Of a stretch of DNA of 64,000 nt, positions 139-34,050 are shown one piece after another (position 1 is the first letter of the stretch; every line of letters begins with the position of its first letter). The notes beneath the pieces are model-generated. The model searched no databases. It was given only the letters and a program-made list of their open reading frames with translations, and was not told the origin of the DNA. Position numbers and translations under genes: made by a program. The stretch lies in sequence record ON568341.1. One strand, 5' to 3'.

Positions 139-144
139 GTACAT

Positions 145-166
145 AGCCCACCTGGTGGGCTTTTTT
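145..166 (+). terminator. Rho-independent terminator
   Basis: AGCCCAC-ctg-GTGGGCT stem followed by a T-run. Confidence 0.85.
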
Positions 167-371
167 GTTTTTGTAGTATCGTAGTACTGAGATACTTTGA
201 AAATAGTTTTAAGAAAGTAGTTGACATTACCGCAGAAAAGCGTAGAATGTATTACATCAAGACGGGGAGCACTAAGTAGACCGCCAGTAAGTCGAACGAA
301 AAACTGGACACGTCGAGAAAACTTTGATACACTAATAAACGTAAACTAAACTTTAATTGAGGATTTATAAA

Positions 372-854
372 ATGGCTAATGTAAAATCATTTCTGAAAGC
401 ACTGATTTCTAACGACACTGCTATTGCGGCTGAATTGCTGGCGGATCTGGATAGCGATACCATGAAAGCAGTACGCAACAATTTTAACATTGCGTACAGT
501 GAAGCTAAAGAACTGCAAGCCAAAAAGATAGCAGAACTGGAAGAACAGAAAAAAGCCCGTGAAGAAGAACTACAAGCAACGATTGAAAGTATTCAGGCGG
601 CGGTTGCAGGGTTGGATCTGGAAGTAGTTATTGAAATGGCACATAAAGCACTGGCAGTTAAGTACGGGGAAGATAAGCCAGTAACTAAACCTAAAAAATG
701 GATTCAGGAACGCGTAACGGTTGTTCTTGATAATGGCGAGGAACATTTAATTCCCGTGCGTGGTAACTGCATTGCGGTAGTTCTGGATGCTATCAAAGAA
801 AGCGGATTGACTCGCGAGGAATGGATCGAAGCTCACCGCAAAATTGAAGCATAA
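372..854 (+). CDS. H-NS/StpA-like protein with a divergent DNA-binding motif
   Basis: N-terminal coiled coil. The C-terminal VLDNGEEHLIPVRGNCIAVVLDAIKESGLTREEWI aligns without gaps to the E. coli H-NS segment [35 protein letters not shown] (recalled from memory). SD GAGG precedes ATG 372. Confidence 0.6.
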   Translation: MANVKSFLKALISNDTAIAAELLADLDSDTMKAVRNNFNIAYSEAKELQAKKIAELEEQKKAREEELQATIESIQAAVAGLDLEVVIEMAHKALAVKYGEDKPVTKPKKWIQERVTVVLDNGEEHLIPVRGNCIAVVLDAIKESGLTREEWIEAHRKIEA

Positions 855-875
855 CAATTAAAGTACTGAATCACT

Positions 876-902
876 AGCCCACTTCTTATAGTGGGCTTTT
901 TT
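876..902 (+). terminator. Rho-independent terminator
   Basis: AGCCCACT...AGTGGGCT followed by a T-run. Confidence 0.85.
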
Positions 903-1129
903 GTGTTTATCGTTTACCAGTCCACTAGCACCGCCTAGAATCGATTCTAACGCATTAAACTGATTATCTGATGAATAGCCCTAGCTGGTGGCGTTAATGC
1001 CGTTAGAAAGCGATTGAGGACGTTTAAAGTATTTTGCAAAAAGTAATAAAAAGTACTTGCACGATTAAGAGATTAGAGTATAATTAATTACATCAAGACA
1101 AGACACCTTAACTAACTGAGGATATAAAG

Positions 1130-1282
1130 ATGAATACTTATGAACTGGATTGTTTCACTTTACAAGTAATGTCAGTATGCAGTAAAAAAGATTGGTCATC
1201 AAAGGAATTTAAAGCAGTTATTGCGTGTGCAAAACACGGCAAGACTATCAATGAAACGGCATCAATCATTGATAAACTTTAA
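1130..1282 (+). CDS. Hypothetical protein (50 aa, not in the ORF track)
   Basis: Promoter at 1057, SD GAGGA, MNTYELDCF...IDKL*. Confidence 0.7.
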   Translation: MNTYELDCFTLQVMSVCSKKDWSSKEFKAVIACAKHGKTINETASIIDKL

Positions 1283-1354
1283 AAAATAGTTTGACAATAG
1301 TTTTAAGTACTGCGATAATACATACATCAACTACTGAATAGGAATAAAAAAACA

Positions 1355-1582
1355 ATGGCTATCATCATTACTTACGTATCTGGTACTACTGGCACTGCTT
1401 CAACTGTTGCTGTAATTACTAATAAGAAAGGAGCGGAATTACATTTTGCAATGGATAATTGGGCCGTGAAGGAGTTCGGACCGTGGGCAAGTGTAGCATA
1501 CATTGAAACCTATCAAGTGCCATCGATTAGCTTAACTGATTTAGGTGTAGATCGAATCTTATGCCTGGATGAATTAATTTAA
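1355..1582 (+). CDS. Hypothetical protein
   Basis: Own promoter and SD. Confidence 0.75.
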   Translation: MAIIITYVSGTTGTASTVAVITNKKGAELHFAMDNWAVKEFGPWASVAYIETYQVPSISLTDLGVDRILCLDELI

Positions 1583-1668
1583 AAAAGTACTTGCAAAGTA
1601 AATCGAATAAAGTATAATACATTACATCAAGGGGAGAAAATGGTTCTCCCCACTAAGAGGAAACTAAT

Positions 1669-1812
1669 ATGAAAACTTGTCAATGTGGTAAAAAATCTAT
1701 TACTGGTTTGAAACGGGGCGTTGCACTTTGCCAGTACCATTATAATTTACAAGTATGGGGTAAAGAATGGGCCGATCAAGTGGAAGCAATTAAGAAAGCA
1801 AAAAGTAAGTAA
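1669..1812 (+). CDS. Small Cys/His-rich protein, possible Zn ribbon (47 aa)
   Basis: Promoter, hairpin leader and SD GAGG; CQC...CQYH. Confidence 0.7.
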   Translation: MKTCQCGKKSITGLKRGVALCQYHYNLQVWGKEWADQVEAIKKAKSK

Positions 1813-1893
1813 AAATATTATCACAGTACTATTGACATAGATTGATAGTACTGGCATAATAGATTTTATCAAGACAACTAAGAGGAAATTAAA

Positions 1894-2238
1894 ATGGCTA
1901 ACATCAATACTATAGCAGCACAAAATATTAACCTGTCTTCTGTTGAAGTTGTACACATTGCCGCCCGGCGTTGGTTCCAGGCGTCTTATGGTAATACTTA
2001 TTTCTCTTTAACGGTAGATGTTGAAATCAATGGCGAATTTATTGAAGTAGTAAACGTGCCGTTCCAATATGGCTACGGGGATCATTTTGACACTGTAGCA
2101 ATGGAAGAATTTAGCAAGGTTATTAATATGGAAGGTAAAGAGTTTTTACGCGGTTCTTATCTTTCCCGTTTTTGCCGTGATAATAATATTACTGTTTATA
2201 GTTCTGTTAGTGATGTTAAACGCAAAAAAGATCTTTAA
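1894..2238 (+). CDS. Hypothetical protein, paralogue of 7732-8055
   Basis: Shared GNTY.S, YGYG and DVKRKKD motifs. Confidence 0.8.
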   Translation: MANINTIAAQNINLSSVEVVHIAARRWFQASYGNTYFSLTVDVEINGEFIEVVNVPFQYGYGDHFDTVAMEEFSKVINMEGKEFLRGSYLSRFCRDNNITVYSSVSDVKRKKDL

Positions 2239-2318
2239 TTAGCTTTACTTTATGCAGATACTTTGATATAGTGTCTGCATAGGGGAAAGAAATTAAATCA
2301 ACTTAAGAGGATAGTAAA

Positions 2319-2588
2319 ATGAAAAATATCAGTACTTTAATCGATGCAGGCACACATGTTCGTCGGTCTATGGTTGCAACCAGTTCTACAAAACAAGTAG
2401 CGAGCGGTTATCTTGTATTTGTGCACGATGGAAAACTCCTGGAACGTTCAATCAATTTTGATGTTAAAAACAATTGCCGTTTTATTATCTTTAAGCGTGA
2501 GCAATATAAAATTGATTTACCAGCAAAGCCCATTAGTGGGGCGTACAACGTGCAATCATTGTTTGAGCGTCAACCATACACCTATTAA
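2319..2588 (+). CDS. Hypothetical protein
   Basis: Promoter at 2244, SD GAGGA. Confidence 0.75.
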   Translation: MKNISTLIDAGTHVRRSMVATSSTKQVASGYLVFVHDGKLLERSINFDVKNNCRFIIFKREQYKIDLPAKPISGAYNVQSLFERQPYTY

Positions 2589-2639
2589 TCAAAACAACGT
2601 TAGCGGTCGATTTAGGCCGCTTATACTGGGGATTATATA

Positions 2640-2810
2640 ATGAATACTAATCAAGTACTGAACGAGATTGAAAGCATCATTAAACCGATGAAGCGTACTG
2701 ATGCAATGTTAACACCGGAAGAATGCCGCTTATATGAGCGTTACAGCGTCGAACAAGTCCAGGCAATGGCCCGTATCCGTCCGGTTGCCAGTACTGATAA
2801 GGCGGCGTAA
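2640..2810 (+). CDS. Hypothetical protein (56 aa, not in the track)
   Basis: SD GGGGA, MNTNQVLNE...DKAA*. Confidence 0.6.
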   Translation: MNTNQVLNEIESIIKPMKRTDAMLTPEECRLYERYSVEQVQAMARIRPVASTDKAA

Positions 2811-2811
2811 T

Positions 2812-3021
2812 ATGCTTACTGTACAGGATAAGATCGACATCTTAAAGGTTAATATGTATGTGATTGATGCCGTACCTGGTAAAGTATTTGCATACGATGA
2901 CACCACTGTAAGCAATTTCTACTATAGCCAGGACGTGGGGGATCTTTCTGTACAGTCGGTTATTGAAAATGTAGTTAATGCAGCGTATGAGCATTTACTT
3001 TCAAATAGTACTTGCAATTAG
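2812..3021 (+). CDS. Hypothetical protein
   Basis: ATG immediately follows the upstream stop; start corrected from 2734. Confidence 0.65.
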   Translation: MLTVQDKIDILKVNMYVIDAVPGKVFAYDDTTVSNFYYSQDVGDLSVQSVIENVVNAAYEHLLSNSTCN

Positions 3022-3090
3022 TTTTCAGTACTGTATAATGTTTTACATGAAGGGGAGAAATAGTACTCCCCACTAATTAAGGAATATGAA

Positions 3091-3237
3091 ATGAAAGCAT
3101 CAAAAAAGAGTAATACTAAGAAAGCATGTTCACCTTTCGCTGGGGTATTCCCTTTACGTTTCGTTGATGAAGTGGTTTCCTACCCGCCGGGCCTTACTCC
3201 TGAGATGGTAGAAAGTTTGCGTAAATCTAAAAAATAA
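3091..3237 (+). CDS. Hypothetical basic protein (48 aa)
   Basis: Promoter at 3012, hairpin leader, SD AAGGA. Confidence 0.65.
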   Translation: MKASKKSNTKKACSPFAGVFPLRFVDEVVSYPPGLTPEMVESLRKSKK

Positions 3238-3318
3238 TACTTGCAATTAGTTTTTAGTACTGTATAATGTTTTACATGAAGGGGAGAAATGATTCTCCCC
3301 AAGAACAGGAGAAACAAA

Positions 3319-3471
3319 ATGAAACAATACAACGCTCGGTTTGATGTTACTATCGGCAACGGCAAAGGTCAATTCTCTTTCAGTACTCGTAAGAGTTATA
3401 CAGAAAACTTCTTGCGTAATTGTGCACTGACCGCCGCACAAATTAAACATTATTTTCAGGCTAAAAAATGA
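3319..3471 (+). CDS. Hypothetical protein
   Basis: Promoter at 3241, SD AGGAG; start corrected. Confidence 0.7.
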   Translation: MKQYNARFDVTIGNGKGQFSFSTRKSYTENFLRNCALTAAQIKHYFQAKK

Positions 3472-3557
3472 AATCATTAGCTTATTATAGTTCGGCCCTG
3501 GTCGGTGCATTGATCGCGGCATTGTTAGTAGCTTATCTATTCTTTATGGTGATTTAA

Positions 3558-3695
3558 ATGAATCCTAACGGTATAATTTACAGTACTCCTAAAACGAAAG
3601 CAGATAAAGCTAAAGCACGTAAAGCGAAAGTAAAGGAATACATCAAGCAAGGCATGACACGAAAGGCGGCGATTCTAAAAGCTAAAAATAAATGA
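3558..3695 (+). CDS. Very basic small protein (45 aa)
   Basis: MNPNGIIYSTPKTKADKAKARKAK...; SD GGTGA. Confidence 0.55.
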   Translation: MNPNGIIYSTPKTKADKAKARKAKVKEYIKQGMTRKAAILKAKNK

Positions 3696-3800
3696 AAAAA
3701 GTGGTTGACTTCGGTCAGCCATTTTGCTATTATATAATCATTGAGAGATAGCTCACTAGCCCACGGGGTGCGGGAGTGTATCTATTATATAAGCATTGAG
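3695..3800 (+). ncRNA. Terminator/promoter/small-RNA cassette, copy 1
   Basis: Hairpin containing TTGACT-17-TATTAT, then an ORF-less stem-loop with a TAGCCCACGGGGTGC core. Confidence 0.5.
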
Positions 3801-3916
3801 TACTGAAAACTATTTTAAAAGTATTTGCAGAAAGTACTTGCAAACTATCTCAATTGGCGTATAATGTTTTACATCGCAAGGGGAAACGGTTTCCCCTAGT
3901 AATAAGGAATAAAATC

Positions 3917-4258
3917 ATGACTATTGCAATTGTACAATCTAACTTTGAAAATGAAATCATCGCCCAAGCACTGCGTTTAAATGATGGTCGGGCCGAAATT
4001 AATTACGGTTTCAATTCAGGCGGTTGTGAAAAATATCAGTACTTTATAACTGCTGATGGCGGTGTCCTGGGTATTAATACAGTTATTGTAAACATTCAGA
4101 AAATTAATTTCAATGATCCAGACGATAGCCAGTTTTACATTATAGGCGTAGACGTGAACTATGAGGATGACTCACTAACTGATGATTACACTGGCGAGAA
4201 GTTAGAAAGTGCATACGGTGAAGATGATTATCAGTCAGTACCAGAAGATTTCGAATAA
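3917..4258 (+). CDS. Acidic hypothetical protein
   Basis: Promoter at 3838, SD AAGGA; start corrected. Confidence 0.75.
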   Translation: MTIAIVQSNFENEIIAQALRLNDGRAEINYGFNSGGCEKYQYFITADGGVLGINTVIVNIQKINFNDPDDSQFYIIGVDVNYEDDSLTDDYTGEKLESAYGEDDYQSVPEDFE

Positions 4259-4358
4259 TATTAAAAAATAGTTTGACAATAGATTATAGTACTGTATAAT
4301 AGTTTACATCAAGAAACGGGAAGTAACAGTACTTCCCTACTAACAGAGAGAAAACAAA

Positions 4359-4571
4359 ATGGCTGATATCCGCACTTTACTGAAAAATGCAAAACGAGTT
4401 TTATTTTCTGATCACGAACATTTAAACAAGGATATTACTGGCGTTCGGAATATCAAAGATGTAAAACGTGTTATGGGTATCTATTGCAATATGAAACGTG
4501 TTGGCACGTTCGGTAATAAATTTCTATACCAGGCGGGGGATTACAATTTTACACTGACTATCATTAACTAA
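4359..4571 (+). CDS. Hypothetical protein
   Basis: Own promoter, leader hairpin and SD. Confidence 0.75.
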   Translation: MADIRTLLKNAKRVLFSDHEHLNKDITGVRNIKDVKRVMGIYCNMKRVGTFGNKFLYQAGDYNFTLTIIN

Positions 4572-4653
4572 AAATATTATCACAGTACTATTGACATAGT
4601 TTGATAGTACTGGCATAATAGATTTTATCAACTACACTACTAAGGAATTAAAA

Positions 4654-4833
4654 ATGGCTATCATCGCAAAAACTGAAATCATCGGCCTGGATTCTATCAT
4701 CATGACGTTTGAAGATCAAAAAGGTATGTATGTAGTTTCCTATGGTGATTATGTTCGGGAGTATGAAACAGTAGACGAAGCCTTTGAAAGTTACATTCGC
4801 CAGGTGAATAAAGCATACGACGATTACCGCTAA
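4654..4833 (+). CDS. Hypothetical protein (59 aa, not in the track)
   Basis: Promoter at 4591, SD AAGGA. Confidence 0.7.
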   Translation: MAIIAKTEIIGLDSIIMTFEDQKGMYVVSYGDYVREYETVDEAFESYIRQVNKAYDDYR

Positions 4834-4946
4834 AATATATTACCAGTACTATTAAAGATATTGACAACGTTTGATAGTACTGGCATAATAAGTTTTATAA
4901 ACAGTAGTCAAATAGTAGTTAACTTAACAAAAGAGAGAGAAACAAA

Positions 4947-5090
4947 ATGATCGCACTGGATTCATTCATCGATGCAGTTCTGGCAAAAACTGGCGAGGAT
5001 CTGACCGCAGAACAATACGCAATGATCGAGCAATGCCAGCAAGACGGTAAATCGGTGAAAGATACTGTTAAGATTATCCGCAAGATGTAA
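4947..5090 (+). CDS. Hypothetical protein (47 aa, not in the track)
   Basis: Promoter at 4861, AG-rich SD, terminator downstream. Confidence 0.7.
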   Translation: MIALDSFIDAVLAKTGEDLTAEQYAMIEQCQQDGKSVKDTVKIIRKM

Positions 5091-5096
5091 GATTAT

Positions 5097-5125
5097 AAGC
5101 CCATTAGTTAACGCTGGTGGGCTTT
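5097..5125 (+). terminator. Terminator hairpin containing a Chi site
   Basis: AAGCCCA...TGGGCTT with GCTGGTGG at 5113. Confidence 0.7.
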
Positions 5126-5196
5126 AATCATTTACCCTATACAATGCCAGTACTAAACCGTTTATCTCATTAGAATGCATTACAGGACGTTTAACA

Positions 5197-5394
5197 ATGA
5201 TTAGCATGAAATCAGTACAAAAACAAATAGAAACATTATCAAAAATTAAACGTAAACAGTACTCATTAGAATATAATATCAATGGTAACTATCATCTAAT
5301 GAAAGAGAATAATTTTATCGTCATTGATGAATCATTGCAAATTATTAGTATAGTACTGAAAGCATTAATTAATGATAGAAAAAGGTTAAAATAA
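5197..5394 (+). CDS. Hypothetical protein
   Basis: SD AGGA; coupled to the next gene. Confidence 0.6.
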   Translation: MISMKSVQKQIETLSKIKRKQYSLEYNINGNYHLMKENNFIVIDESLQIISIVLKALINDRKRLK

Positions 5395-5651
5395 TGGCAG
5401 TAGGATTCGCGAAAGATGGAGCCGAGCAAGATGAGATTAACGCAGTTATTCAAGCCGCCGTTAACCACGCTAGAAAGCAAATTAACGCACAAATAGAATC
5501 ACTGATACATTGCCTCGACTGCGGCGATAAAATCCCTGAGAATCGCCGACAGGCTGTTAAGGGATGTAAGTACTGCATTAATTGCCAAGTGGATCATGAT
5601 AGTACTTTTAAAAGAGATCCGCGTAATTGTTGGCATAGATCTATGAGATAA
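5394..5651 (+). CDS. TraR/DksA-family C4 zinc-finger protein (YbiI-like)
   Basis: MAVGFAKDGAEQDEI N-terminus and CLDCGDKIPENRRQAVKGCKYCINCQ zinc finger. Confidence 0.9.
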   Translation: MAVGFAKDGAEQDEINAVIQAAVNHARKQINAQIESLIHCLDCGDKIPENRRQAVKGCKYCINCQVDHDSTFKRDPRNCWHRSMR

Positions 5652-5715
5652 AAAGTAATTGACAGTACTGAAAGATAGTGTATAATGTTTTATATCTTAA
5701 CTGAGGATAGAAATC

Positions 5716-6072
5716 ATGGGAATACAACATATCACGCGGACCACTGACAATGGCGAGATCACTGGTTATCAAGTACAGGGCAAAGTAGCACAATTGCAGT
5801 ACTGGTTTGTTAAACGTGGAATCATTGCACCGGATCTTGATTATGACCGTGTAGCGTTTATTGATTCTCTTTATGTTGATCCTGATAGTCGGGGCAATGG
5901 TGAAGGTAACGAATTAATGAATGCCTTTATCGATGCCGCCGATGATTCAGATTGTATCATCTTAGAATGCGATACGGGAGAAGATAACGCCTTTAATCTT
6001 AAAGAATGGTACGAAGGATTCGGATTCGAGGTACTGATCGATAGTGAATATCCTATCATGATTTTATCATAG
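5716..6072 (+). CDS. GNAT-family acetyltransferase
   Basis: IDSLYVDPDSRGNGEGNELM (motif A) and WYEGFGF (motif B). Confidence 0.85.
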   Translation: MGIQHITRTTDNGEITGYQVQGKVAQLQYWFVKRGIIAPDLDYDRVAFIDSLYVDPDSRGNGEGNELMNAFIDAADDSDCIILECDTGEDNAFNLKEWYEGFGFEVLIDSEYPIMILS

Positions 6073-6150
6073 TACTTGCATTTAGTTTTCAGTACTGTTA
6101 TAGTACTTGCATCAAGGGGAAACATCTTCCCCTACTAAGAGGAAATAAAA

Positions 6151-6339
6151 ATGGAAAACTTATCAAGTATTTTAGTACAAGATGATTTCGGTAATCCTGG
6201 AAGTGCTATCATTGTTCGGGGCAATAAAGCAACGTTTGTTATTGCTGGTGGACCCGTACAGCGTAGCATTAAAAATAATGCTGTTACCATTAATAATGTA
6301 CGCTATCGCTTAGATAAAGAATTAATTCATAAACTGTAA
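6151..6339 (+). CDS. Hypothetical protein
   Basis: Own promoter, hairpin and SD. Confidence 0.75.
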   Translation: MENLSSILVQDDFGNPGSAIIVRGNKATFVIAGGPVQRSIKNNAVTINNVRYRLDKELIHKL

Positions 6340-6424
6340 AAAAGTACTGGACAATAGATTATAGTACTGTATAATAGTTTACATGAAGGGGAGAAATGAT
6401 TCTCCCCACTAAGAGGAAAGAAAA

Positions 6425-6637
6425 ATGCAAGGTCAACTAATCGTTCGTAAATGGTCTGATACTAACGAAAAACCGTGGGATGTACAATACATCGCCCCAA
6501 ATGGTGAATCCAGATATCAACCAGGTGTAACGCATAGTACTGAGCAATTCGCCGCCGCTCATCGCGAACGTCTGTTACAATCAATGCAGCACGGTTCCGG
6601 TGAAAAATTCATTCAGGATCATTGGCTGAAAGATTAA
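6425..6637 (+). CDS. Hypothetical protein
   Basis: Own promoter, hairpin and SD. Confidence 0.75.
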   Translation: MQGQLIVRKWSDTNEKPWDVQYIAPNGESRYQPGVTHSTEQFAAAHRERLLQSMQHGSGEKFIQDHWLKD

Positions 6638-6723
6638 AAAGTACTTGCACAGTACTGAATAAAGTGTATAATGTTTTATATCGGAAGGGGAATAGTTCCC
6701 CTCCTAACAAAGAGGAAAGTATA

Positions 6724-6897
6724 ATGGTCCAGGTAGAATTAACAGTACTGAAAGATCTGTTTTATCGGATTGGTACTACTGGCGAATATCCGAAGGGTGA
6801 TAATGCAAAACTTTACGTATCACTCGACTTATGGCAACGCGAACAATTAGCAACGGCCTGGCGTAAAGGCAAAGCAGATAGCGAGGTGAAAGCATGA
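6724..6897 (+). CDS. Hypothetical protein
   Basis: Promoter at 6645, SD GAGGA; start corrected. Confidence 0.7.
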   Translation: MVQVELTVLKDLFYRIGTTGEYPKGDNAKLYVSLDLWQREQLATAWRKGKADSEVKA

Positions 6898-7043
6898 AAG
6901 AATTCTTATTTGAAGTAGTGTTTCAAGGTGTCGGTAATAACCAACTGATTCGAACAAGTGGTTATAATGTTAACCAGGCATGGAATAACATTAAACAAAT
7001 GTACCCGAACGCTATCACATATCGCAACCCGAAAGAAGTTTAA
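6894..7043 (+). CDS. Hypothetical protein (49 aa, not in the track)
   Basis: ATGA overlap, SD GAGGTG. Confidence 0.65.
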   Translation: MKEFLFEVVFQGVGNNQLIRTSGYNVNQAWNNIKQMYPNAITYRNPKEV

Positions 7044-7052
7044 AAATAATTG

Positions 7053-7155
7053 AAAAAGGGATTGACTCCGGTCAGTCCCTTTGCTATTATATACGCATAG
7101 AAACAAATTAGCCCACCGGGTGCATAAATGTATCTATTGTTTGCTGGTGGCTAGT
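7053..7155 (+). ncRNA. Terminator/promoter/small-RNA cassette, copy 2 (with Chi)
   Basis: AAAGGGATTGAC-TCCG-GTCAGTCCCTTT, TAGCCCACCGGGTGC core, Chi at 7143. Confidence 0.5.
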
Positions 7156-7368
7156 ACTATCAAGTACTGAAAACTATTTTTAAAAAAGTACTTGCAAAGT
7201 ATCACGATAAGCGTATAATGTTTTACATCAGGACGGGGAACGAAATAAGTAACCCCGTTAAGTAGTCCAGGAGTAAGACATACGAAAAACTCCCCTGATA
7301 AAATAGTTTGACAATAGAAAGTAAACGAGTATAATACTTACATCAACCACTGATAAGGAAACATTAAA

Positions 7369-7644
7369 ATGCGGACTTTACTTACAGCTAACGAAATCGA
7401 GCAAGTACTGACTACTAATCTGGAACAATGGAAACGTGAAGCAGATATCCAGGCGGTTCAATGCCTTAACGATAAGTTAACGCCAGATGACTTAAGCACG
7501 ATTGTTGATCCACAATTTTATGAAGATATTCACGACACGTCTTTAAGCGTCGAGGATGTACTTGATAAGCACTACATTGATACTGATTTACATGTTTACG
7601 GTCGTAAAAACTTTATCACTATTCACGACATTTACAATACTTAA
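7369..7644 (+). CDS. Hypothetical protein
   Basis: Promoter at 7308, SD AAGGA. Confidence 0.75.
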   Translation: MRTLLTANEIEQVLTTNLEQWKREADIQAVQCLNDKLTPDDLSTIVDPQFYEDIHDTSLSVEDVLDKHYIDTDLHVYGRKNFITIHDIYNT

Positions 7645-7731
7645 GTATTGACAAAGTATCTTAGTACTGTATAATAGTTTACATCAAGCGAGGGGAATGG
7701 TTCCCCTCCTAACAAAGAGAGAGAAATAAAA

Positions 7732-8055
7732 ATGGCTATGATCCTTACCCAGAAAGTAGAACTGAAAATTGTAACCTCCTTTGACATTAAAGTTAATCGG
7801 TGGACTGATAGCCACGGCAATACTTACCACTCCTGCTACGTGTCCGCATTGATTGGTGATCGCTGGGAAGACCTGGGACACGAAACCTTTACATACGGTT
7901 ACGGCACACAAGGCGAGTACACGGGTTTAGAAATCATTAAGGAAACTGTAATAGGTTTCAACCCGAAAGAGAAAGTACTACACAGAATTGAGAAAGAGAT
8001 CAACAAAGAAATTACAGTTCGCTACTACGATGTAAAACGTAAGAAAGACATGTAA
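7732..8055 (+). CDS. Hypothetical protein, paralogue of 1894-2238
   Basis: GNTYHS, YGYG and DVKRKKDM motifs. Confidence 0.8.
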   Translation: MAMILTQKVELKIVTSFDIKVNRWTDSHGNTYHSCYVSALIGDRWEDLGHETFTYGYGTQGEYTGLEIIKETVIGFNPKEKVLHRIEKEINKEITVRYYDVKRKKDM

Positions 8056-8150
8056 TAGAATCCATTTAAAGTACTATTTGACATTGCCCAGATAGTACTT
8101 TATAATAGACTCTAACTTGTAGTACTAACTCAACTAATAGGATGTATACC

Positions 8151-8546
8151 ATGATTACTAAATTCTACGCTACCCGTGAAGCTGCCCGTATTGTTGCACG
8201 CGAGGAAGGAGCAGCATTTAAAGACATGGGCAAAGATGCAACGAAAGGTCAACGCTGGGCCGTACAGTTCAAAGAAATCTCTGATATTGTGAATTCACCT
8301 GAGCCAGTACTGACAGCAGCAGAACTAAAACGAGCGGATATGCTGGCGGCAATACTTGACGCACAAGATGAGTTTATCGCTGACTCTGATATCAAAGTAC
8401 AGGTAAACCACACCGCATGGACTCACGCGGATCACCTGGCAAACCTTAAGCGTCCAAGTGAACTGATTCGCAACCAGAAAGAGATCCGACATGATCGTAA
8501 GGGTAATCGTGTAACAGTATACAGTAAACGCCGCCAGGTTATCTAA
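8151..8546 (+). CDS. Hypothetical protein
   Basis: Promoter at 8078, SD AGGA, terminator downstream. Confidence 0.75.
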   Translation: MITKFYATREAARIVAREEGAAFKDMGKDATKGQRWAVQFKEISDIVNSPEPVLTAAELKRADMLAAILDAQDEFIADSDIKVQVNHTAWTHADHLANLKRPSELIRNQKEIRHDRKGNRVTVYSKRRQVI

Positions 8547-8568
8547 TAACTTGCAGTACTAACAACAC

Positions 8569-8593
8569 GGCGGGATCAGTTCCCGCCTTTTTT
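8569..8593 (+). terminator. Rho-independent terminator
   Basis: GGCGGGA...TCCCGCC followed by T6. Confidence 0.85.
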
Positions 8594-8607
8594 ATAGGAC
8601 AAACAAA

Positions 8608-8862
8608 ATGATTAAGGTTCAACTATATAAAGATAACATCTTACGGGTACACTATAAAGCACCTCAGAGAATCATCACAAAGGCCGTACAGCTTGCTAAT
8701 GAGTTTATTAATGGTAACCTATTACCTAGGAAGTTAAGCAACGGAAAACTGCGTGTAATCGACGTGGACACTAACAACAGGATAGTAATCGAGAACACAG
8801 GAAAAATAAACCTATATGAACACCAACAATACAATAAGAAAATAAAACTAATATCACGTTGA
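8608..8862 (+). CDS. Hypothetical protein
   Basis: SD AGGA. Confidence 0.65.
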   Translation: MIKVQLYKDNILRVHYKAPQRIITKAVQLANEFINGNLLPRKLSNGKLRVIDVDTNNRIVIENTGKINLYEHQQYNKKIKLISR

Positions 8863-9194
8863 CAGTACTCAAATGTTTTAGTATTATGTACACATACCAA
8901 CACGGGAGAAACAAAATGAAATTATCTAAAATCGAAAAGAAAACTATTGATGAAGCAGTTAAGCACGGTTATACCTTTCGTAATGATTCACATTTTACCA
9001 ATTTTCAACAGGGGTATCGTACTATTAAAAAACTAATTGACAAAGGTTTATTAGTTGAAGTCAATAATGGGAACGGTATCGAGTATCAGCCAACCCAAGA
9101 CGCATTATCTTTAAAGAAATATAATATTATCTAATTGACAGTACTCAAATGTTTTAGTACTATATGTACATACCAACACGGGGGAAACAAAATG
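8859..9194 (+). repeat. Duplicated ~60-bp promoter/RBS cassette (8859-8918 and 9135-9194)
   Basis: TTGACAGTACTCAAATGTTTTAGTA...CATACCAACACGGG.GAAACAAAATGA in both copies. Confidence 0.9.
8916..9134 (+). CDS. Hypothetical protein
   Basis: Start corrected; the track start lies inside the promoter. Confidence 0.75.
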   Translation: MKLSKIEKKTIDEAVKHGYTFRNDSHFTNFQQGYRTIKKLIDKGLLVEVNNGNGIEYQPTQDALSLKKYNII

Positions 9195-9434
9195 ATTACT
9201 TTAGAAAAACGTATCAAAGAAACTACATCGCTGGTGGAACTGTTAACAGTACTCAAATGTAAAACAACACCATTTAGCACGCCGGACTTTATTAATATGG
9301 TTGATGTTAATGGTCGCTATCGTATCACGGTCGAACAAGGAGCGGCGAAAGTATTCAGTACTAAAAACACGAAGGAAGTGATCCACGCCGTTAATGTTAA
9401 AAAAGTAGTTGCCATTGATAGTAAAGTACTGTAA
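9192..9434 (+). CDS. Hypothetical protein
   Basis: Start corrected; the track start lies inside the promoter. Confidence 0.75.
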   Translation: MITLEKRIKETTSLVELLTVLKCKTTPFSTPDFINMVDVNGRYRITVEQGAAKVFSTKNTKEVIHAVNVKKVVAIDSKVL

Positions 9435-9465
9435 TATAGTTTCATTAACTCAAGGAGAACATGCA

Positions 9466-10050
9466 ATGCGTAATTATACTAAATTCATCCGTACACTGTC
9501 AGAAATGGAAACCAACAAAGAGATCCTTTCAGCTTGTCGGTTAGCTGGCCTGGAGATCATCGGTGCTGGTTCTTCCCGTATAGTTTTCGCTTTAAATGAT
9601 CGGTTAGTGATTAAGGTCGCGAATTGTGATGCGGGTGTAGAACAAAATGAAACTGAATGTAAGGTATGGAATTTTTTAGACTATGACCGCCCTCAGTTGA
9701 AACAGTACTTTGCAAAGGTGCATATGCATTTATGCGATCCTGATAATATGTTTATCGTTATGGATCGGTTGAGTACTGCAAGCAAAGGTAGTGTGAAGCA
9801 CGTAAACGCGTGCAATGAATTAAAGTACAATATTAAACGTAATGCAATCGAACGCCATCACCGCTTTGCTGATGCACTACAACACGTCGATGATACATTA
9901 TCAACACTAACGATAAGAGATATCAGAAAACAGAATATCGGCCAGGATCGTAATGGCCTTATTAAAGTACTTGATTACGGTTTAACCTGCAATATCTGGA
10001 ATCAGTACTATAAAAAGCGTGATGTGGCAGCAAGTAAGGTAACACGATAA
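9466..10050 (+). CDS. Protein kinase-like (Ser/Thr kinase fold)
   Basis: Gly loop GAGSSR, VIK lysine, helix-C QNETE, catalytic loop RDIRKQNIG, DYG metal-binding motif; SD AAGGAG. Confidence 0.8.
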   Translation: MRNYTKFIRTLSEMETNKEILSACRLAGLEIIGAGSSRIVFALNDRLVIKVANCDAGVEQNETECKVWNFLDYDRPQLKQYFAKVHMHLCDPDNMFIVMDRLSTASKGSVKHVNACNELKYNIKRNAIERHHRFADALQHVDDTLSTLTIRDIRKQNIGQDRNGLIKVLDYGLTCNIWNQYYKKRDVAASKVTR

Positions 10051-10060
10051 AAAAGATTAA

Positions 10061-10165
10061 AAAAGGGATTGACTCCGGTCAGTCCCTTTGCTATTATATA
10101 TCCATTGAGAGATAACTCACTGACCCATAGGGTGCGGAAGTGTATCTATTATATAAGTATTCAGT
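10061..10165 (+). ncRNA. Terminator/promoter/small-RNA cassette, copy 3
   Basis: Same hairpin as copies 2 and 4; TGACCCATAGGGTGC core; body resembles copy 1. Confidence 0.5.
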
Positions 10166-10274
10166 ACTGAAAACTATTTTTAAAAAAGTACTTGCAAACT
10201 ATCTCAATGAGCGTATAATGTTTTATATCGAGAGGGGGAAATGGTTCTCCCTAGTACTAAAAGGAATCAAGACG

Positions 10275-10496
10275 ATGACTACTATGACCTGCGTTCACGC
10301 TTCAAATCTTCTGAATGATGCAGCATTTAAAGCAGGTGAAGAATATCAATGCTATCGGGATGAAAATAAAAAAGTTTTTGTAGTTGATAATAATGGTTTC
10401 CATATTGAATTACAATCCGGCTTCACTGGTTTAAATGGTAAATCAGTATGGGGCGTACAGGATGATAAAGGTACATATCATTTTAAACGTAATTAA
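10275..10496 (+). CDS. Hypothetical protein
   Basis: Promoter at 10192, SD AAGGA; start corrected. Confidence 0.75.
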   Translation: MTTMTCVHASNLLNDAAFKAGEEYQCYRDENKKVFVVDNNGFHIELQSGFTGLNGKSVWGVQDDKGTYHFKRN

Positions 10497-10577
10497 GTAT
10501 TGACAAAGTATATCAGTACTGTATAATAGTTTACATCAAGGGGAGAATGGTTCTCCCCACTAAAAGGAAACAAAATT

Positions 10578-10850
10578 ATGTCCAGCTACTCCGCTACTAT
10601 GATCATTAAAGATATGAACGGTAATCCTACTTCTGCTGGTGGATCATTTGGAAACATTAATTTAGATGGTCGGTTATCCATGCAATCAGCCATCGATGCA
10701 GCGAAAGAAGTTTTTAAGAATGAATGTACTGTTAGTAAGCTGGATTATATGGGTTTCGCTATCGAGAAAACTACTCGTTTTGTGAACTACAAAAATCCAC
10801 TGATGATTGATACTAACCTGAAAGCTAACGAAGTGGGGTACTTATTATGA
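10578..10850 (+). CDS. Hypothetical protein
   Basis: Own promoter, hairpin and SD. Confidence 0.75.
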   Translation: MSSYSATMIIKDMNGNPTSAGGSFGNINLDGRLSMQSAIDAAKEVFKNECTVSKLDYMGFAIEKTTRFVNYKNPLMIDTNLKANEVGYLL

Positions 10851-11038
10851 CAGTAGAAGAAGTAAAAAAAGTACTGGCAGTACTACGATATCATAATCAT
10901 TGCAAGGTGAAGAATGATCCTGATTATCTTGATTCATCCCTGGAGGAAGACACCTTGAACGCTATAAGCCATATGCAGACATTAGCAAAGCGTATGACTG
11001 AAAAGAACATGCCGGACTATATCGGAAATAAAATTTAA
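10847..11038 (+). CDS. Hypothetical protein
   Basis: ATGA overlap. Confidence 0.7.
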   Translation: MTVEEVKKVLAVLRYHNHCKVKNDPDYLDSSLEEDTLNAISHMQTLAKRMTEKNMPDYIGNKI

Positions 11039-11124
11039 AAAGTACTTGCATTGTAGTTAGATTAACGTATAATGTTTTATATCGAGAGGGGAAATGGTTT
11101 CCCCTCAAGTCCAGGAGATACACC

Positions 11125-11388
11125 ATGAACACTATCGAAATCACTATCAATGCACACGTATACGACAACGTAGTACTGCAAACTACTATGACCGCCAATG
11201 ATACCAGTACTTTGCGGAATACTGTTATTAGTGCTGTATGTGCCGCTATCGGTGATGTATCCCTGGAAAATTCAGAACACATCAACAACGGTTTCACTAT
11301 GTGCAAACGTGATAACGCAAAACATATCATCGTGGAAGGTTACGGCGGTGTAGAATTTAATGTTTATATGAAAAAAGTACTTGCATAA
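11125..11388 (+). CDS. Hypothetical protein
   Basis: Own promoter, hairpin and SD AGGAG. Confidence 0.75.
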   Translation: MNTIEITINAHVYDNVVLQTTMTANDTSTLRNTVISAVCAAIGDVSLENSEHINNGFTMCKRDNAKHIIVEGYGGVEFNVYMKKVLA

Positions 11389-11455
11389 TAACTAAAACAA
11401 AGTATAATGTTTTGCATAGGGGGAGATATCCTCCCCCACTAAAAGGAGTAATAAA

Positions 11456-11680
11456 ATGGCTAACTTTGATGAACTGATGCGGGAAGTAGCTTACCTGGCA
11501 GAAGAGAAGAAATCATTCGATTCTATCTATAACACCGCTCACCGTGATTCAGTACTGGCATGTAACCAGGATCAAAAAGATGAACTAATCGCCACCTATC
11601 ATGAAGCATGGAAGTACTACCGACAATGGGAGAAAGAAGAAAGTGAGTCTACCATTGACGGCCTCAATAATCTAATCTAA
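11456..11680 (+). CDS. Hypothetical protein
   Basis: Own promoter, hairpin and SD. Confidence 0.75.
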   Translation: MANFDELMREVAYLAEEKKSFDSIYNTAHRDSVLACNQDQKDELIATYHEAWKYYRQWEKEESESTIDGLNNLI

Positions 11681-11756
11681 AAGTTTTATTTCAGTACTAT
11701 TGACATAGCTTGATAGTACTGATGTAATAACTTTACTAACTACAAGGGGAAACATA

Positions 11757-12014
11757 ATGGATCAATTCACACAATATCGGGTAAATCCTCAAGCTATGGC
11801 CTACGTAGAAGACCATAAAACGTTACCAGTACTGCAACCAGTTAAAGGCCGTATCTATCGTGGCCTTGCCTGGGATACGGCCCAGGATGGATATAAAACC
11901 GTCGCCGTGGGTATGTATTGCGGTGATGGTGAATGGTTTGATCCAAATAATCCGGTATCCATTGACAGTACTGAAAAAATGAAATGGGCCGACTACATCG
12001 AAGATATTTCATAA
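11757..12014 (+). CDS. Hypothetical protein
   Basis: Promoter-like cassette and SD. Confidence 0.75.
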   Translation: MDQFTQYRVNPQAMAYVEDHKTLPVLQPVKGRIYRGLAWDTAQDGYKTVAVGMYCGDGEWFDPNNPVSIDSTEKMKWADYIEDIS

Positions 12015-12104
12015 AAACTATTTGACAGTACTAACCAGTAATGTATAATGTTTTACATAGAGCGGGGGAATAGTTCTCCCGCCAATAGTTTGGAGTAAAA
12101 CATT

Positions 12105-12305
12105 ATGTCTATCGCTATCGCCCTGGTTGAAGTACTGAAAGAAGCTAAAGCCAACCTTATCGACGTAAAGATCCAGGAACTACAAAACGGCTTAATCGGC
12201 TGTACTTGTACCGCTGGTGGAGCGGCAGACTATCGAGAACACGAATCACTCGAATCACTGGTTCGGTATCTTACCATGATCGTTGATGATTGGAGAATCA
12301 TCTAA
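12105..12305 (+). CDS. Hypothetical protein
   Basis: Own promoter, hairpin and SD. Confidence 0.75.
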   Translation: MSIAIALVEVLKEAKANLIDVKIQELQNGLIGCTCTAGGAADYREHESLESLVRYLTMIVDDWRII

Positions 12306-12320
12306 CAAAAAAGAATAAAA

Positions 12321-12450
12321 AAAGGGATTGACTCCGGTCAGTCCCTTTGCTATTATATACGCATAGACAAAAACTAGCCCACAGGGTGCATAGGTGTATC
12401 CAAAATATATAGTTAATAACGGTGAGTAACTATCTGCTGGTGGAACTAAA
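12321..12450 (+). ncRNA. Terminator/promoter/small-RNA cassette, copy 4 (with Chi)
   Basis: Same hairpin; TAGCCCACAGGGTGC core; Chi at 12436. Confidence 0.5.
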
Positions 12451-12550
12451 ACTATTAATAAAAAAGTATTGACAAAGTATATCAGTACTGCAATAATGTA
12501 TCTCGTAGGGCGGCAATGGTGCGACGGCCCACAAAGTTAGGAGATTCACC

Positions 12551-12883
12551 ATGAGTACTTCAATCGCTATCGTTAAAGCTTTCATCCGTACTAATGTTTC
12601 CTCTGTATTCATCGACGGCCTCGACCGTAACGTAGAATACTCAATCATTATCGCACAAACGGCAAACGGTTCTCGGTACATCCTGAATGATAGTGAAGCA
12701 AATCACTACTACTTCACTAAAGCCACTGGCTTTAAACGCATCGATGCTGATGTAGTATACGCTAAGATGAATAAGCTGGTAGACAAGATTAACGCGAAAG
12801 GTACTATCGATTTACAGTACTGGACCGAAACCGATCCAGAATATGGATCTCACCGCTACCTGAATCCAGGTATCAAAATGTAA
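12551..12883 (+). CDS. Hypothetical protein
   Basis: Own promoter, hairpin and SD AGGAG. Confidence 0.75.
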   Translation: MSTSIAIVKAFIRTNVSSVFIDGLDRNVEYSIIIAQTANGSRYILNDSEANHYYFTKATGFKRIDADVVYAKMNKLVDKINAKGTIDLQYWTETDPEYGSHRYLNPGIKM

Positions 12884-12972
12884 AAAGTACTTGCATAGTA
12901 CTTAGATTCATGTATAATGTTTTACATAGAGAGGGGGAAATGGTTCTCCCTCCTAAATTAAGGAGTTTTATC

Positions 12973-13374
12973 ATGACCTTCTCAATCACTTCCTTCGCTG
13001 ACGTTTTAGTACTGGCCCGGACTTTTGGTAAAGCTGGCCTTGAGCACGCTGTAAGTAATGGTCATATGCACCCTGAATATTGCCGCATCATCGGTAGCTG
13101 CAAACGTTGGGCCGTGTCCCGTAACATTGAGATTGAAAACTTCAATGACGGCAACAACGAATATACAGTTGATGCAGTATTCGAAGCCGTTGATCTCGGC
13201 GGTATCTATAACACTAACCTGAATGATGTGCGTATCGTTCGCACGGGGTTCGGTGCTTATGATGTATCTATCCGTGAAGCTATGGACAAGGGATACATTA
13301 GCAAGGACCAGTTAGCTTACATCATGCAGCAAACTAAGGAACGTAACGAAGCACGTACTATCTTAGGGTTGTAA
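12973..13374 (+). CDS. Hypothetical protein
   Basis: Promoter at 12891, SD AAGGAG; start corrected. Confidence 0.75.
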   Translation: MTFSITSFADVLVLARTFGKAGLEHAVSNGHMHPEYCRIIGSCKRWAVSRNIEIENFNDGNNEYTVDAVFEAVDLGGIYNTNLNDVRIVRTGFGAYDVSIREAMDKGYISKDQLAYIMQQTKERNEARTILGL

Positions 13375-13398
13375 GCGTTACACATCACCAAACATCAT

Positions 13399-13420
13399 AG
13401 GCCGCCTTGTAGCGGCCTTA
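13399..13420 (+). terminator. Terminator-like hairpin
   Basis: AGGCCGC-cttgta-GCGGCCT. Confidence 0.6.
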
Positions 13421-13442
13421 ACTATATCAGGAGTTCATACAC

Positions 13443-34045: not shown

Positions 34046-34050
34046 AACAA

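Follow-up and report, generated by a model that had tools for sequence, protein, structure and literature searches.

Several phages are known to defend their linear DNA against RecBCD with a protein that either inhibits the enzyme or caps the DNA ends, examples being lambda Gam, T7 gp5.9, P22 Abc and T4 gp2. A different relation to the same enzyme has been described for phage P1, in which RecBCD and RecA were experimentally shown to be required for recombining the terminal repeats, where Chi sites are concentrated. The RecBCD literature takes the non-coding and frame signature of the P1 sites as selection for Chi itself. Lambdoid phages of the LLS type, which have no Rec module, have been read as co-opting host RecBCD (Zheng et al. 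2025, Genome Res). A further point of comparison is T5, since PhageTerm assigns the ends of the jumbo phages considered here to the "T5 type".

The window analyzed here, 64 kb of record ON568341.1 starting at its position 124,001, comes from Escherichia phage UE-S1, a virulent myovirus (358 kb) in the genus Asteriusvirus. Its Chi-rich stretch forms the right two-thirds of the direct terminal repeat (DTR) of this phage. This part of the DTR is of early type, with about 39 small genes on the + strand, most of which have their own sigma-70-like promoter (seven perfect 12/12 matches and about 30 with at least 10/12, nearly all on the + strand), and its GC fraction is 0.38 vs 0.32 in the remaining window. 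An exhaustive search of both strands for the Chi octamer (GCTGGTGG) returned exactly the ten exact matches named in a preliminary description of this DNA, namely eight on the + strand of the early region and, outside it, one at 59587 (+) and one at 50952 (−). The features to which the following text refers are:

1..13804, + strand: right-hand 13.8 kb of the DTR, part of the ~19.9-kb UE-S1 DTR (record 117,923-137,804)
984..991, + strand: Chi 1, intergenic, with a terminator hairpin (876-897) on one side and the next promoter on the other; 12.8 kb to the right terminus; intact in 6/6 Asteriusvirus genomes
5113..5120, + strand: Chi 2, intergenic, just past a gene end, its 3' half serving as descending arm in an AGCCCA...TGGGCT hairpin; intact in 6/6 genomes
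6244..6251, + strand: Chi 3, in a small ORF (6151-6339), frame GCT-GGT-GG (Ala-Gly-Gly); intact in 6/6 genomes
7143..7150, + strand: Chi 4, intergenic, in the terminator/promoter cassette copy at 7042, within a short insertion absent from the other copies; intact in 6/6 genomes
9230..9237, + strand: Chi 5, in an ORF (9135-9434), frame G-CTG-GTG-G (Leu-Val); intact in 6/6 genomes
10635..10642, + strand: Chi 6, in an ORF (10599-10850), frame GCT-GGT-GG; intact in the 5/5 genomes having the segment
12213..12220, + strand: Chi 7, in an ORF (12105-12305), frame GCT-GGT-GG; 1.58 kb to the right terminus; intact in the 3/3 genomes with a clear ortholog, the segment being absent or poorly aligned in the other three of the six
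12436..12443, + strand: Chi 8, intergenic, in the cassette copy at 12308, at a cassette position unlike that of Chi 4; intact in 6/6 genomes
13792..13804, + strand: last 13 bases of the DTR, GGGCGGGTAACCT; right physical genome end in the right-hand DTR copy

The preliminary description had guessed a DNA end near 13.7 kb, on the 3' side of the array, and an end was indeed located there, at 13804. In UE-S1 this terminus is assigned through homology to relatives and not by read mapping, and it applies to the right-hand DTR copy of virion DNA only. The independently determined DTR ends of vB_Ec-M-J (position 21525; annotated DTR of 21,525 bp) and fEgEco12 (position 20993; DTR of 20,993 bp, established by PhageTerm and restriction digests) share their final 13-mer with the sequence ending at 13804, and the right terminus has been mapped by PhageTerm in two relatives. 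The authors of UE-S1 gave a different DTR of 8.3 kb, which others consider misassigned. Chi 8 is the first Chi from the right terminus, and the distance between them (1,361 bp, or 1.36 kb) is identical in J and fEgEco12.

The claimed local enrichment withstood all background models applied. Between 984 and 12443, eight + copies were observed vs 0.07-0.36 expected from Markov models of orders 0-4, an excess of 20-80 fold over models that were trained on positions 1-13800 of the window itself (order 5 was overfitted by the Chi sites themselves). Dinucleotide shuffles yielded an expectation of 0.28 copies per 64 kb for both strands, and none of 100 shuffles gave ten. This enrichment is specific to the full Chi octamer: all eight GCTGGTG heptamers and eight of the nine CTGGTGG heptamers in the region belong to complete Chi sites, whereas the GCTGGT hexamer, once the Chi copies are subtracted, has the same density inside and outside the region. 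Among 8-mers with at least six G/C bases only Chi reaches at least five copies, and the remaining frequent 8-mers are all parts of repeated promoter or hairpin cassettes.

Transfer of the UE-S1 annotation to window coordinates placed four sites (984, 5113, 7143, and 12436) between genes, as previously described, so that half of the array is intergenic in a region of which 72% is coding. Two of these, 7143 and 12436, do lie in the repeated non-coding cassette, at non-homologous positions, and the remaining cassette copies (3685 and 10049) have no Chi; this points to a separate origin of the two sites rather than to duplication. Within genes, the sites lie mostly outside the CTG-GTG frame.

Conservation was then considered across six Asteriusvirus genomes, in which eight of the nine + Chi of UE-S1 are intact wherever the segment aligns. 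Mismatches amount to 1.5% in the Chi octamers vs 7.8% DTR-wide (permutation P=0.006), and full conservation is seen in only 35% of random octamers; as the genomes are related, these P values are optimistic. On this comparison, the Chi octamers appear to be under purifying selection. Turnover of sites was also observed: fEgEco12 and TH47 have an extra Chi at a position that in J departs from Chi by one base, another additional site is present in 121Q, and a − Chi found 62 nt upstream of Chi 1 in relatives has decayed to CCACTAGC in UE-S1.

The Chi array is restricted to the DTR. It runs 6.1 kb left beyond the window start, including one oppositely oriented Chi, so that the whole 19.9-kb DTR of UE-S1 has nine + and one − Chi (about 1 per 2.0 kb). 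On its left, this DTR is preceded by 9.9 kb devoid of Chi, and the 50 kb to its right hold one on each strand. The genome-wide strand count against a Markov background that had been suggested earlier was performed in the relative TH47 (352 kb), and it revealed a Chi excess in the 18.5-kb DTR (eight + and two −) and background level in the other 334 kb (nine + and four − vs 5.4-6.8 and 3.5-4.3 expected). The enrichment is local, the sites are conserved and a genome end lies on their 3' side, which supports the interpretation given in the preliminary description. Similar arrays recur in other genera on Chi-using hosts. The PhageTerm-mapped 19.7-kb DTR of Klebsiella phage fENko-Kae01 contains 12 + and two − Chi vs one of each in the next 30 kb, with four sites in promoter spacers and the last one 375 bp from the terminus, and the DTR of Pectobacterium phage CBB contains seven + and two − vs two and one in the next 22.5 kb. 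The arrays of these two distant genera occupy positions of their own, non-homologous to the Asteriusvirus sites. In the 39-kb DTR of the Pseudomonas relative PA5oct, GCTGGTGG was not found.

The orientation of the sites requires a more careful statement than it was first given. The + sites do face the end on their right; the array also has an opposite-facing Chi, and the + strand is G-rich, so that the models already favor + Chi by about 3-4 to 1 and the 8:0 bias alone is within expectation from strand composition. Pooling three lineages gave a +:− ratio of 28:6 vs ~3:1 predicted from strand composition (P=0.22). The − Chi are likewise enriched (P about 0.002-0.01 per genome) and lie farther left than the + sites (Mann-Whitney P=0.003), which indicates that Chi tend to face outward. 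Moving leftwards from the right terminus, correctly oriented Chi occur at 1.4, 1.6, 3.2, 4.6, 6.7, 7.6, 8.7, 12.8, and about 19.3 kb; in the other direction, a correctly oriented − Chi is reached about 0.58 kb in from the left terminus. This left site is paired with a + Chi in a palindrome, CCACCAGC-N4-GCTGGTGG, whose stems are invariant and whose loop is variable (ACAA, TTGT, TTAA), a pattern suggesting constraint on sequence and not on structure. With just one or two active Chi at the left end, any protection would be lopsided.

Taken together, the position, conservation and recurrence of the sites make it reasonably probable that, in this virulent jumbo coliphage, an array of outward-facing Chi within the DTR makes RecBCD give up degradation in favor of RecA loading. 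The phage would probably thereby co-opt the stop-and-recombine signal of host RecBCD, saving and joining its DNA ends. Packaged DNA has the DTR at both ends, and in a singly infecting genome nothing but the repeat has a homologous partner. Ahead of any phage protein being made, RecBCD entering from the right terminus would travel leftwards into the array and, at a Chi, would stop degrading, keep the 3'-ended strand and load RecA while still within the repeat. The loss of the end would thereby be limited, and recombinogenic or complementary 3' tails could join both repeat copies, leading to circularization, concatemer formation or recombination-primed replication. Several Chi would be needed, since each is recognized only part of the time. 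What we infer from this layout is the action of RecBCD at the sites, the order in which the ends are exposed, and the advantage gained by the phage. A counter-point to the proposal is that these phages carry their own recombination genes (TH47 encodes a RecA-family ORF and a UvsW-like helicase; gp46/47, UvsX and endonuclease VII homologues are reported in CBB), which is at odds with the published rule "no Rec module, many Chi".

A decoy would also account for this geometry and enrichment: its main benefit would lie outside recombination, with Chi encounters attenuating or disassembling scarce RecBCD on a redundant repeat and sparing the unique genome and later replication intermediates. Such a decoy relies on the established Chi-dependent inactivation of RecBCD; a phage with its own RecA-like recombinase may do without host recombination, and the repeat is expendable since a second copy is present. 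We nevertheless consider the decoy unlikely, for it leaves unexplained why the array ends exactly at the DTR boundaries and not further inward. Spacer acquisition from a free DNA end proceeds only to the first properly oriented Chi, and terminal Chi might have been selected mainly to shrink the genome part sampled by Cas1-Cas2. The geometry for this is present (outward Chi within 0.4-1.4 kb at the right terminus and about 0.5 kb at the left one), but one Chi per end would be nearly enough, yet 9-12 are present; CRISPR adaptation in E. coli is often weak or silent; and "self-mimicry", the use of Chi as a self/non-self marker, is contested in the RecBCD literature. A main role in limiting adaptation is, for these reasons, rather improbable.

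The array could also be a functionless by-product of the favored codons GCT and GGT, of GGTGGGCT-like terminator arms and of a slightly GC-richer early region. Three of the four coding DTR sites are in the GCT-GGT-GG frame, Chi copies beyond the DTR all lie within ORFs and mostly in that same frame, the terminator at 145-161 holds a 7/8 Chi match, Chi 2 overlaps a hairpin arm, and the orientation bias equals the strand-composition expectation. This explanation is already disfavored, and very unlikely, given a region-trained expectation of at most 0.4 copies, a GCTGGT density that without Chi copies is no higher in the DTR than elsewhere, the intergenic half of the array, octamers better conserved than their flanks, and arrays at differing positions in three genera but missing from the PA5oct DTR. 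Lastly, the octamer might be recognized by something other than RecBCD, a factor of phage or host origin with a role, for example, in packaging, in duplicating the DTR or in controlling early transcription, with its Chi identity coincidental; the left palindrome, whose distance from the terminus is fixed, might bind a protein or form a cruciform, and several sites are in promoter spacers or near terminators. This would, however, require the exact host Chi to be matched by chance in phages of three Enterobacterales hosts, and the positions are unfixed relative to genes and promoters (ORFs, loops and spacers all hold sites), while PA5oct has the same genome layout without the motif. We regard such a factor as highly improbable.

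Returning to the reading in which the array redirects RecBCD within the repeat, its closest counterpart is P1. P1 (and P7 and D6), like UE-S1, far exceeds its host in Chi density; the sites cluster at packaged ends or terminal repeats, are equally common in non-coding and coding DNA and not bound to the CTG-GTG frame, and have the proposed role of RecBCD/RecA recombination of terminal repeats after injection. P1 differs in being temperate and in packaging by headful, which leaves it with a permuted redundancy of varying length (5-10 kb), and its Chi lie on both strands over tens of kb, whereas UE-S1 is a virulent 358-kb phage with an exact ~20-kb DTR, to which an array facing about 85% one way is confined. 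The LLS-type phages are also rich in Chi (1 per 1.9 kb in LLS), and in LLS most face the right end and cluster there, and no octamer of the same class ranks above Chi (Zheng et al. 2025, Genome Res). These phages, however, lack recombinases and RecBCD inhibitors and have Chi across the genome, and LLS has cos ends and no long DTR; recombination proteins, RecA/UvsX-type ones among them, are present in Asteriusvirus and CBB, in which Chi is at background level beyond the DTR. T5 shares an exact long DTR packed with small early genes that host RNA polymerase transcribes, but this repeat, the first-step-transfer DNA that carries the pre-early genes, has only two Chi in 10.2 kb, at or below the genome average, with none facing the left, first-entering end; Chi arrays are thus not general to long DTRs. 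When the ten largest DTR ORFs in the window were inspected, none was recognized as belonging to a family of RecBCD inhibitors or end-capping proteins, but most DTR ORFs have no known function. Gam, gp5.9, Abc and gp2 answer the same problem of exposure to RecBCD with a protein, for which the array would be a DNA-only solution. If this holds, Chi would serve as a signal carried by DNA and acting before gene expression, in a virulent jumbo phage that has a RecA-like protein of its own.

The Chi octamer, GCTGGTGG, was located by an exact motif search of the 64-kb window at the following positions:

984, + strand, Chi 1
5113, + strand, Chi 2
6244, + strand, Chi 3
7143, + strand, Chi 4
9230, + strand, Chi 5
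10635, + strand, Chi 6
12213, + strand, Chi 7
12436, + strand, Chi 8
50952, - strand, Chi
59587, + strand, Chi

The preliminary description had listed the same positions, all of them exact, and the array that it pointed out in the early region holds against chance expectation. Dinucleotide shuffles predict 0.28 Chi in the whole window, and Markov models (orders 0-4), for which window 1-13800 itself supplied the training sequence, predict 0.07-0.36 + copies in that region versus the 8 observed, each the exact octamer of the enterobacterial RecBCD site and all within 984-12443. An order-5 expectation of 2.3 was discarded as overfitted on 14 kb and driven by the Chi sites themselves. The excess belongs to the full octamer, since all GCTGGTG heptamers in the region are full Chi, GCTGGT hexamers, with those in Chi set aside, reach no higher density there than elsewhere in the window, and Chi alone among 8-mers with at least 6 G/C bases reaches at least five copies in the window's part of the direct terminal repeat (DTR), where the other frequent 8-mers are words from repeated promoter/hairpin cassettes. 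The flanks of Chi 1-8 are mutually unrelated.

The window runs from base 124,001 of ON568341.1, the record of Escherichia phage UE-S1, a virulent myovirus of 358 kb in the genus Asteriusvirus (among Rak2-like jumbo phages, the 121Q/PBECO4 group). Its first 13.8 kb carries about 39 small + strand genes, most of them with their own sigma-70-type promoter (seven perfect 12/12 and about thirty with at least 10/12, nearly all +). The corresponding stretch in vB_Ec-M-J (J) is annotated as a DTR of 21,525 bp, and the DTR of fEgEco12 was set at 20,993 bp by PhageTerm, backed by restriction digests. The UE-S1 publication gives a DTR of 8,298 bp, and the fEgEco12 paper considers this 8.3-kb repeat misassigned. 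The right ends of the J and fEgEco12 DTRs, determined independently, share an identical final 13-mer that ends at window 13804, and position 117,923 of the UE-S1 record carries the conserved motif of the left end; these positions predict a UE-S1 DTR of about 19,882 bp (record 117,923-137,804), so that the window starts 6.1 kb into it. An exact, non-permuted repeat at both ends has been physically determined in fEgEco12 (PhageTerm and digests), J and fENko-Kae01, and the UE-S1 boundaries are inferred from the conserved end motifs and differ from the published value. The UE-S1 GenBank record is not rotated to the terminus; packaged DNA bears the DTR at both ends, and window 13804 is the right terminus in the right-hand copy only (in UE-S1, by homology). 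A DNA end to the right of the array, near 13.7 kb, had been predicted in the preliminary description, and both its position and the proposed geometry find support in the independently mapped termini of the relatives: the DTR right end (in UE-S1 by homology only) lies 3' of the octamers, 1,361 bp beyond the last Chi.

Several other features were recorded along the window. Past the DTR boundary, GC falls from 0.38 to about 0.32, and from window 13872-16150 onward there are back-to-back, often overlapping paralogous ORFs of about 65-90 aa, with an internal motif repeated every ~200-400 bp. The palindrome AGTACT (often CAGTACTG) occurs in 90 copies in window 1-13804, 6.5 per kb versus 2.45 elsewhere in the window, most of them in the spacer that separates the -35 and -10 hexamers of promoters; it may serve as a regulator site, and is also the ScaI recognition sequence. 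A leader hairpin of the GGGGAGAA-ATGG-TTCTCCCC type, possibly a transcript-stabilising 5' stem-loop, was found in eight copies directly 3' of promoters and 5' of the ribosome-binding site:

1632-1657, leader hairpin
3052-3077, leader hairpin
3281-3306, leader hairpin
6388-6413, leader hairpin
10233-10258, leader hairpin
10539-10564, leader hairpin
12062-12087, leader hairpin
12932-12957, leader hairpin

At window 30070-30154 (+), ARAGORN called a tRNA-Cys of 85 nt whose anticodon, ACA, is unusual, and no Rfam family scored above threshold anywhere in the window. Megablast matches to the DTR unexpectedly included six "Campylobacter phage" records (host C. jejuni), which may be mislabelled or contaminated. 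In the further relative PA5oct, the DTR genes have been reported as highly transcribed early in infection.

The array was observed to be confined to the repeat. The whole UE-S1 DTR holds 9 + and 1 - Chi; the 9.9 kb to its left hold none and the 50 kb to its right 1 + and 1 -. At 10 sites in 19.9 kb of 38% GC DNA, or about 1 per 2.0 kb, Chi is denser than in the host E. coli (1 per 4.6 kb) and ranks top among octamers, as in a P1-type arrangement. An origin of the array from host DNA was not supported, given this density and a megablast search, covering the phage collection, whose matches were all related jumbo phages. The complete TH47 genome, reoriented to begin at the DTR, allowed a strand-wise count against a Markov background: the 18.5-kb DTR contains 8 + and 2 - Chi, and the other 334 kb contain 9 + and 4 - versus 5.4-6.8 + and 3.5-4.3 - expected (order 3-5 models), so that the excess is local to the DTR and counts elsewhere are near background. 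The + Chi outside the DTR all lie within long ORFs, mostly in the GCT-GGT-GG frame, and look like a codon by-product. A weaker second run, six co-oriented Chi in 23 kb, was noted at about 222-245 kb of the TH47 record (MT446416.1), in or beside the genome part with a RecA-family ORF (33066-34181, - strand, of the compared segment L007) and a UvsW-like helicase; although locally above expectation, it is probably a codon by-product too, with 6/6 sites in long ORFs and 4/6 in the GCT-GGT-GG frame.

Within the array, Chi is not tied to coding and does not fall mainly in the CTG-GTG frame, again as in P1-type phages. Of the eight sites, four fall between genes, in a region with 72% coding and 28% intergenic DNA, and three of the four coding sites are in the GCT-GGT-GG frame. 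Gene annotation and cassette comparison agree with the earlier reading that two of the four intergenic sites belong to a repeated non-coding cassette, which is present in four copies:

3685-3820, non-coding cassette
7042-7134, non-coding cassette
10049-10184, non-coding cassette
12308-12400, non-coding cassette

The front part of the cassette comprises an A-tract, a hairpin (12-bp stem) in which TTGACT resembles a -35 hexamer, and a T-tract in which TATTAT resembles a -10; its rear part comprises a short AGCCCAC...GGGTGC element followed by a second strong promoter. The unit resembles a terminator joined to promoters in tandem. The two cassette Chi occupy differing positions within the unit and the other two copies have none, which indicates that Chi 4 and Chi 8 arose separately; cassette duplication was rejected as their origin on account of these unequal positions. 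Elsewhere, a terminator hairpin, AGCCCACCTGGTGGGCT, at window 145-161 (+) holds CCTGGTGG, one base off Chi, and Chi 2 (5113) overlaps an arm of an AGCCCAC/GTGGGCT-type terminator. New Chi sites would seem to arise readily from terminators of this type.

Chi is active only for RecBCD arriving from its 3' side, so + sites would act for the right terminus and - sites for the left. The - sites are also enriched (P ~0.002-0.01 per genome) and lie further left than the + sites (Mann-Whitney P=0.003). This results in the P1-type layout of an array confined to the DTR with - sites at the left and + sites mostly at the right, each facing its end. Over three lineages, the + to - ratio of 28:6 does not exceed the ~3:1 predicted from the G-rich + strand, and orientation bias was accordingly rejected as a stand-alone sign of selection; co-orientation alone is weak evidence, and positions and enrichment carry the argument. 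The left-most - Chi forms half of a perfect palindrome, CCACCAGC-N4-GCTGGTGG, so that Chi can be read in either orientation; in fENko-Kae01 and every Asteriusvirus genome the palindrome is found 483-587 nt from the left terminus:

UE-S1 record 118,500-118,519 (outside the window; 258-277 of compared segment L002), both strands, Chi palindrome
588-607 of compared segment L001, both strands, Chi palindrome
578-597 of compared segment L011, both strands, Chi palindrome
484-503 of compared segment L012, both strands, Chi palindrome

Its stems are invariant even in the distant fENko-Kae01, and its loops read ACAA, TTGT or TTAA, TTGT being the reverse complement of ACAA. Invariant stems with a varying loop fit a constraint that acts on sequence and not on a hairpin.

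Conservation was examined among six Asteriusvirus DTRs (UE-S1, J, fEgEco12, TH47, BF17 and 121Q), each with 8-10 + and 1-2 - Chi. Eight of the nine UE-S1 + sites are kept in every genome segment that aligns. Mismatches within the octamers amount to 1.5% (5/336 cells, all from one doubtful alignment) versus 7.8% DTR-wide; random octamers are fully conserved in 35% of cases, and the permutation P of 0.006 is optimistic because the genomes are related. Turnover was also observed, with an extra site in fEgEco12 and TH47 where J carries GCTGATGG, and one extra site in 121Q. Outside the genus, such an array recurs in relatives from two distant genera:

fENko-Kae01 (Klebsiella), 19.7-kb DTR set by PhageTerm: 12 + and 2 - Chi in the DTR, 1 + and 1 - in the next 30 kb
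CBB (Pectobacterium), 22.5-kb DTR predicted from read depth: 7 + and 2 - Chi in the DTR, 2 + and 1 - in the next 22.5 kb

Between fENko-Kae01 and UE-S1 almost no DNA is alignable beyond the promoter cassettes; promoter spacers contain four of the fENko-Kae01 Chi and a terminator loop contains one, and 375 bp separate the last Chi from the terminus. In the CBB DTR, Chi is the commonest 8-mer with at least 5 G/C bases. The 39-kb DTR of PA5oct, a Pseudomonas phage, holds 0 copies of GCTGGTGG. A switch of motif with the host was not supported, as the proposed Pseudomonas Chi, GCTGGCGC, occurs there 0 times on + and once on -, and the informative point is solely the absence of GCTGGTGG. The 10.2-kb DTR of T5, the classic coliphage with a long DTR, contains only 2 Chi, and T5 was dropped as a general long-DTR comparator. 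Together, the T5 and PA5oct counts indicate that long DTRs as such do not bring the array with them, and that it is not a motif of the phage clade either. Enteric RecBCD enzymes share GCTGGTGG as Chi, the recorded hosts are E. coli, and the array-bearing relatives grow on Klebsiella and Pectobacterium; the array thus goes with hosts whose RecBCD reads this octamer. Enrichment, confinement, conservation and recurrence give good support to selection for Chi in the DTR.

Linear phage genomes face RecBCD in the first seconds of infection, and DTR phages must also join their repeats; inhibitor or end-capping proteins are the known answers. Assignments for the ten largest DTR ORFs were limited to a GNAT acetyltransferase, a DksA-type zinc finger and a weak kinase-like match, and none of the ten was recognised as a known RecBCD inhibitor. 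We propose that RecBCD, loading at either injected end, would meet an active Chi before leaving the DTR. If Chi is recognised 20-40% of the time per site, as is generally held, nine sites would give 87-99% recognition for the right end; the one or two sites at the left end would give far less cover, and the proposed mechanism does not explain this asymmetry. At Chi, RecBCD ceases to destroy the 3'-ended strand and RecA is loaded. In a single infection the DTR would be the sole homologous partner, and the tails from the two ends would be complementary across it, so that end loss would be limited and the repeats joined, through circularisation, concatemer formation or recombination-primed replication. 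This proposed biochemical role of the array is drawn from established RecBCD biology; the fEgEco12 authors already assume DTR recombination, on general grounds.

We tentatively extend this to a general reading, to which we give somewhat less than an even chance: outward-facing, DTR-confined Chi arrays may be a protein-free, immediate-early device of Rak2-like jumbo phages of Enterobacterales, by which RecBCD halts in the DTR, loads RecA, and circularises the genome or primes the first replication before phage gene expression, the left palindrome acting as a two-way gate. Such arrays would be a DNA-encoded counter-defence that virulent phages hold alongside their own recombinases. Two variants start from the same array and share the evidence for it. 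In one, which we regard as unlikely, the sites would serve as a RecBCD decoy; in the other, more improbable still, they would limit CRISPR spacer uptake.

The literature searched contained no account of Chi arrays in the DTRs of jumbo phages, nor of plating of any Asteriusvirus on rec mutants, and RecBCD and Chi sites go unmentioned in a 2026 jumbo-phage review and in the genome papers of UE-S1, fEgEco12, fENko-Kae01 and CBB. That the array stops at the DTR boundaries, is kept within the genus and is rebuilt at other positions in other genera suggests that virulent 350-kb phages, as an entire clade, place the Chi signal in the DNA that both ends share. If confirmed, this function would explain how RecBCD is handled before phage gene expression and would provide a testable model for long-DTR recombination. 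The array would also make termini in jumbo-phage assemblies inexpensive to locate from sequence; the published UE-S1 DTR is at odds with it.

Among known systems, P1 and some lambdoid phages borrow the host Chi signal. Work from the Smith laboratory supplies the closest precedents, having revealed that P1 and its relatives concentrate Chi where terminal repeats form, P1 cyclisation requiring RecBCD and RecA, and that lambdoid phages lacking a Rec module, such as LLS, cluster many right-facing Chi near the right end. The UE-S1 array resembles both in Chi density, end-directed placement and independence from coding. Unlike P1 and LLS, UE-S1 is virulent and very large, its DTR is exact, its array is DTR-confined, and its group encodes RecA/UvsX-type and other recombination proteins: TH47 has a RecA-family protein (PF00154, 54 bits versus a cutoff of 27) and a UvsW-like helicase, and the CBB paper describes homologues of gp46/47, UvsX, UvsW and endonuclease VII. 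The absence of a Rec module, which defines the LLS class, consequently does not hold for the group, and the group also departs from the high genome-wide Chi density of that class, TH47 being near Markov expectation outside its DTR. If the function is confirmed, an own recombinase and the use of Chi would not be alternatives, which would break the current "Rec module or Chi" dichotomy.
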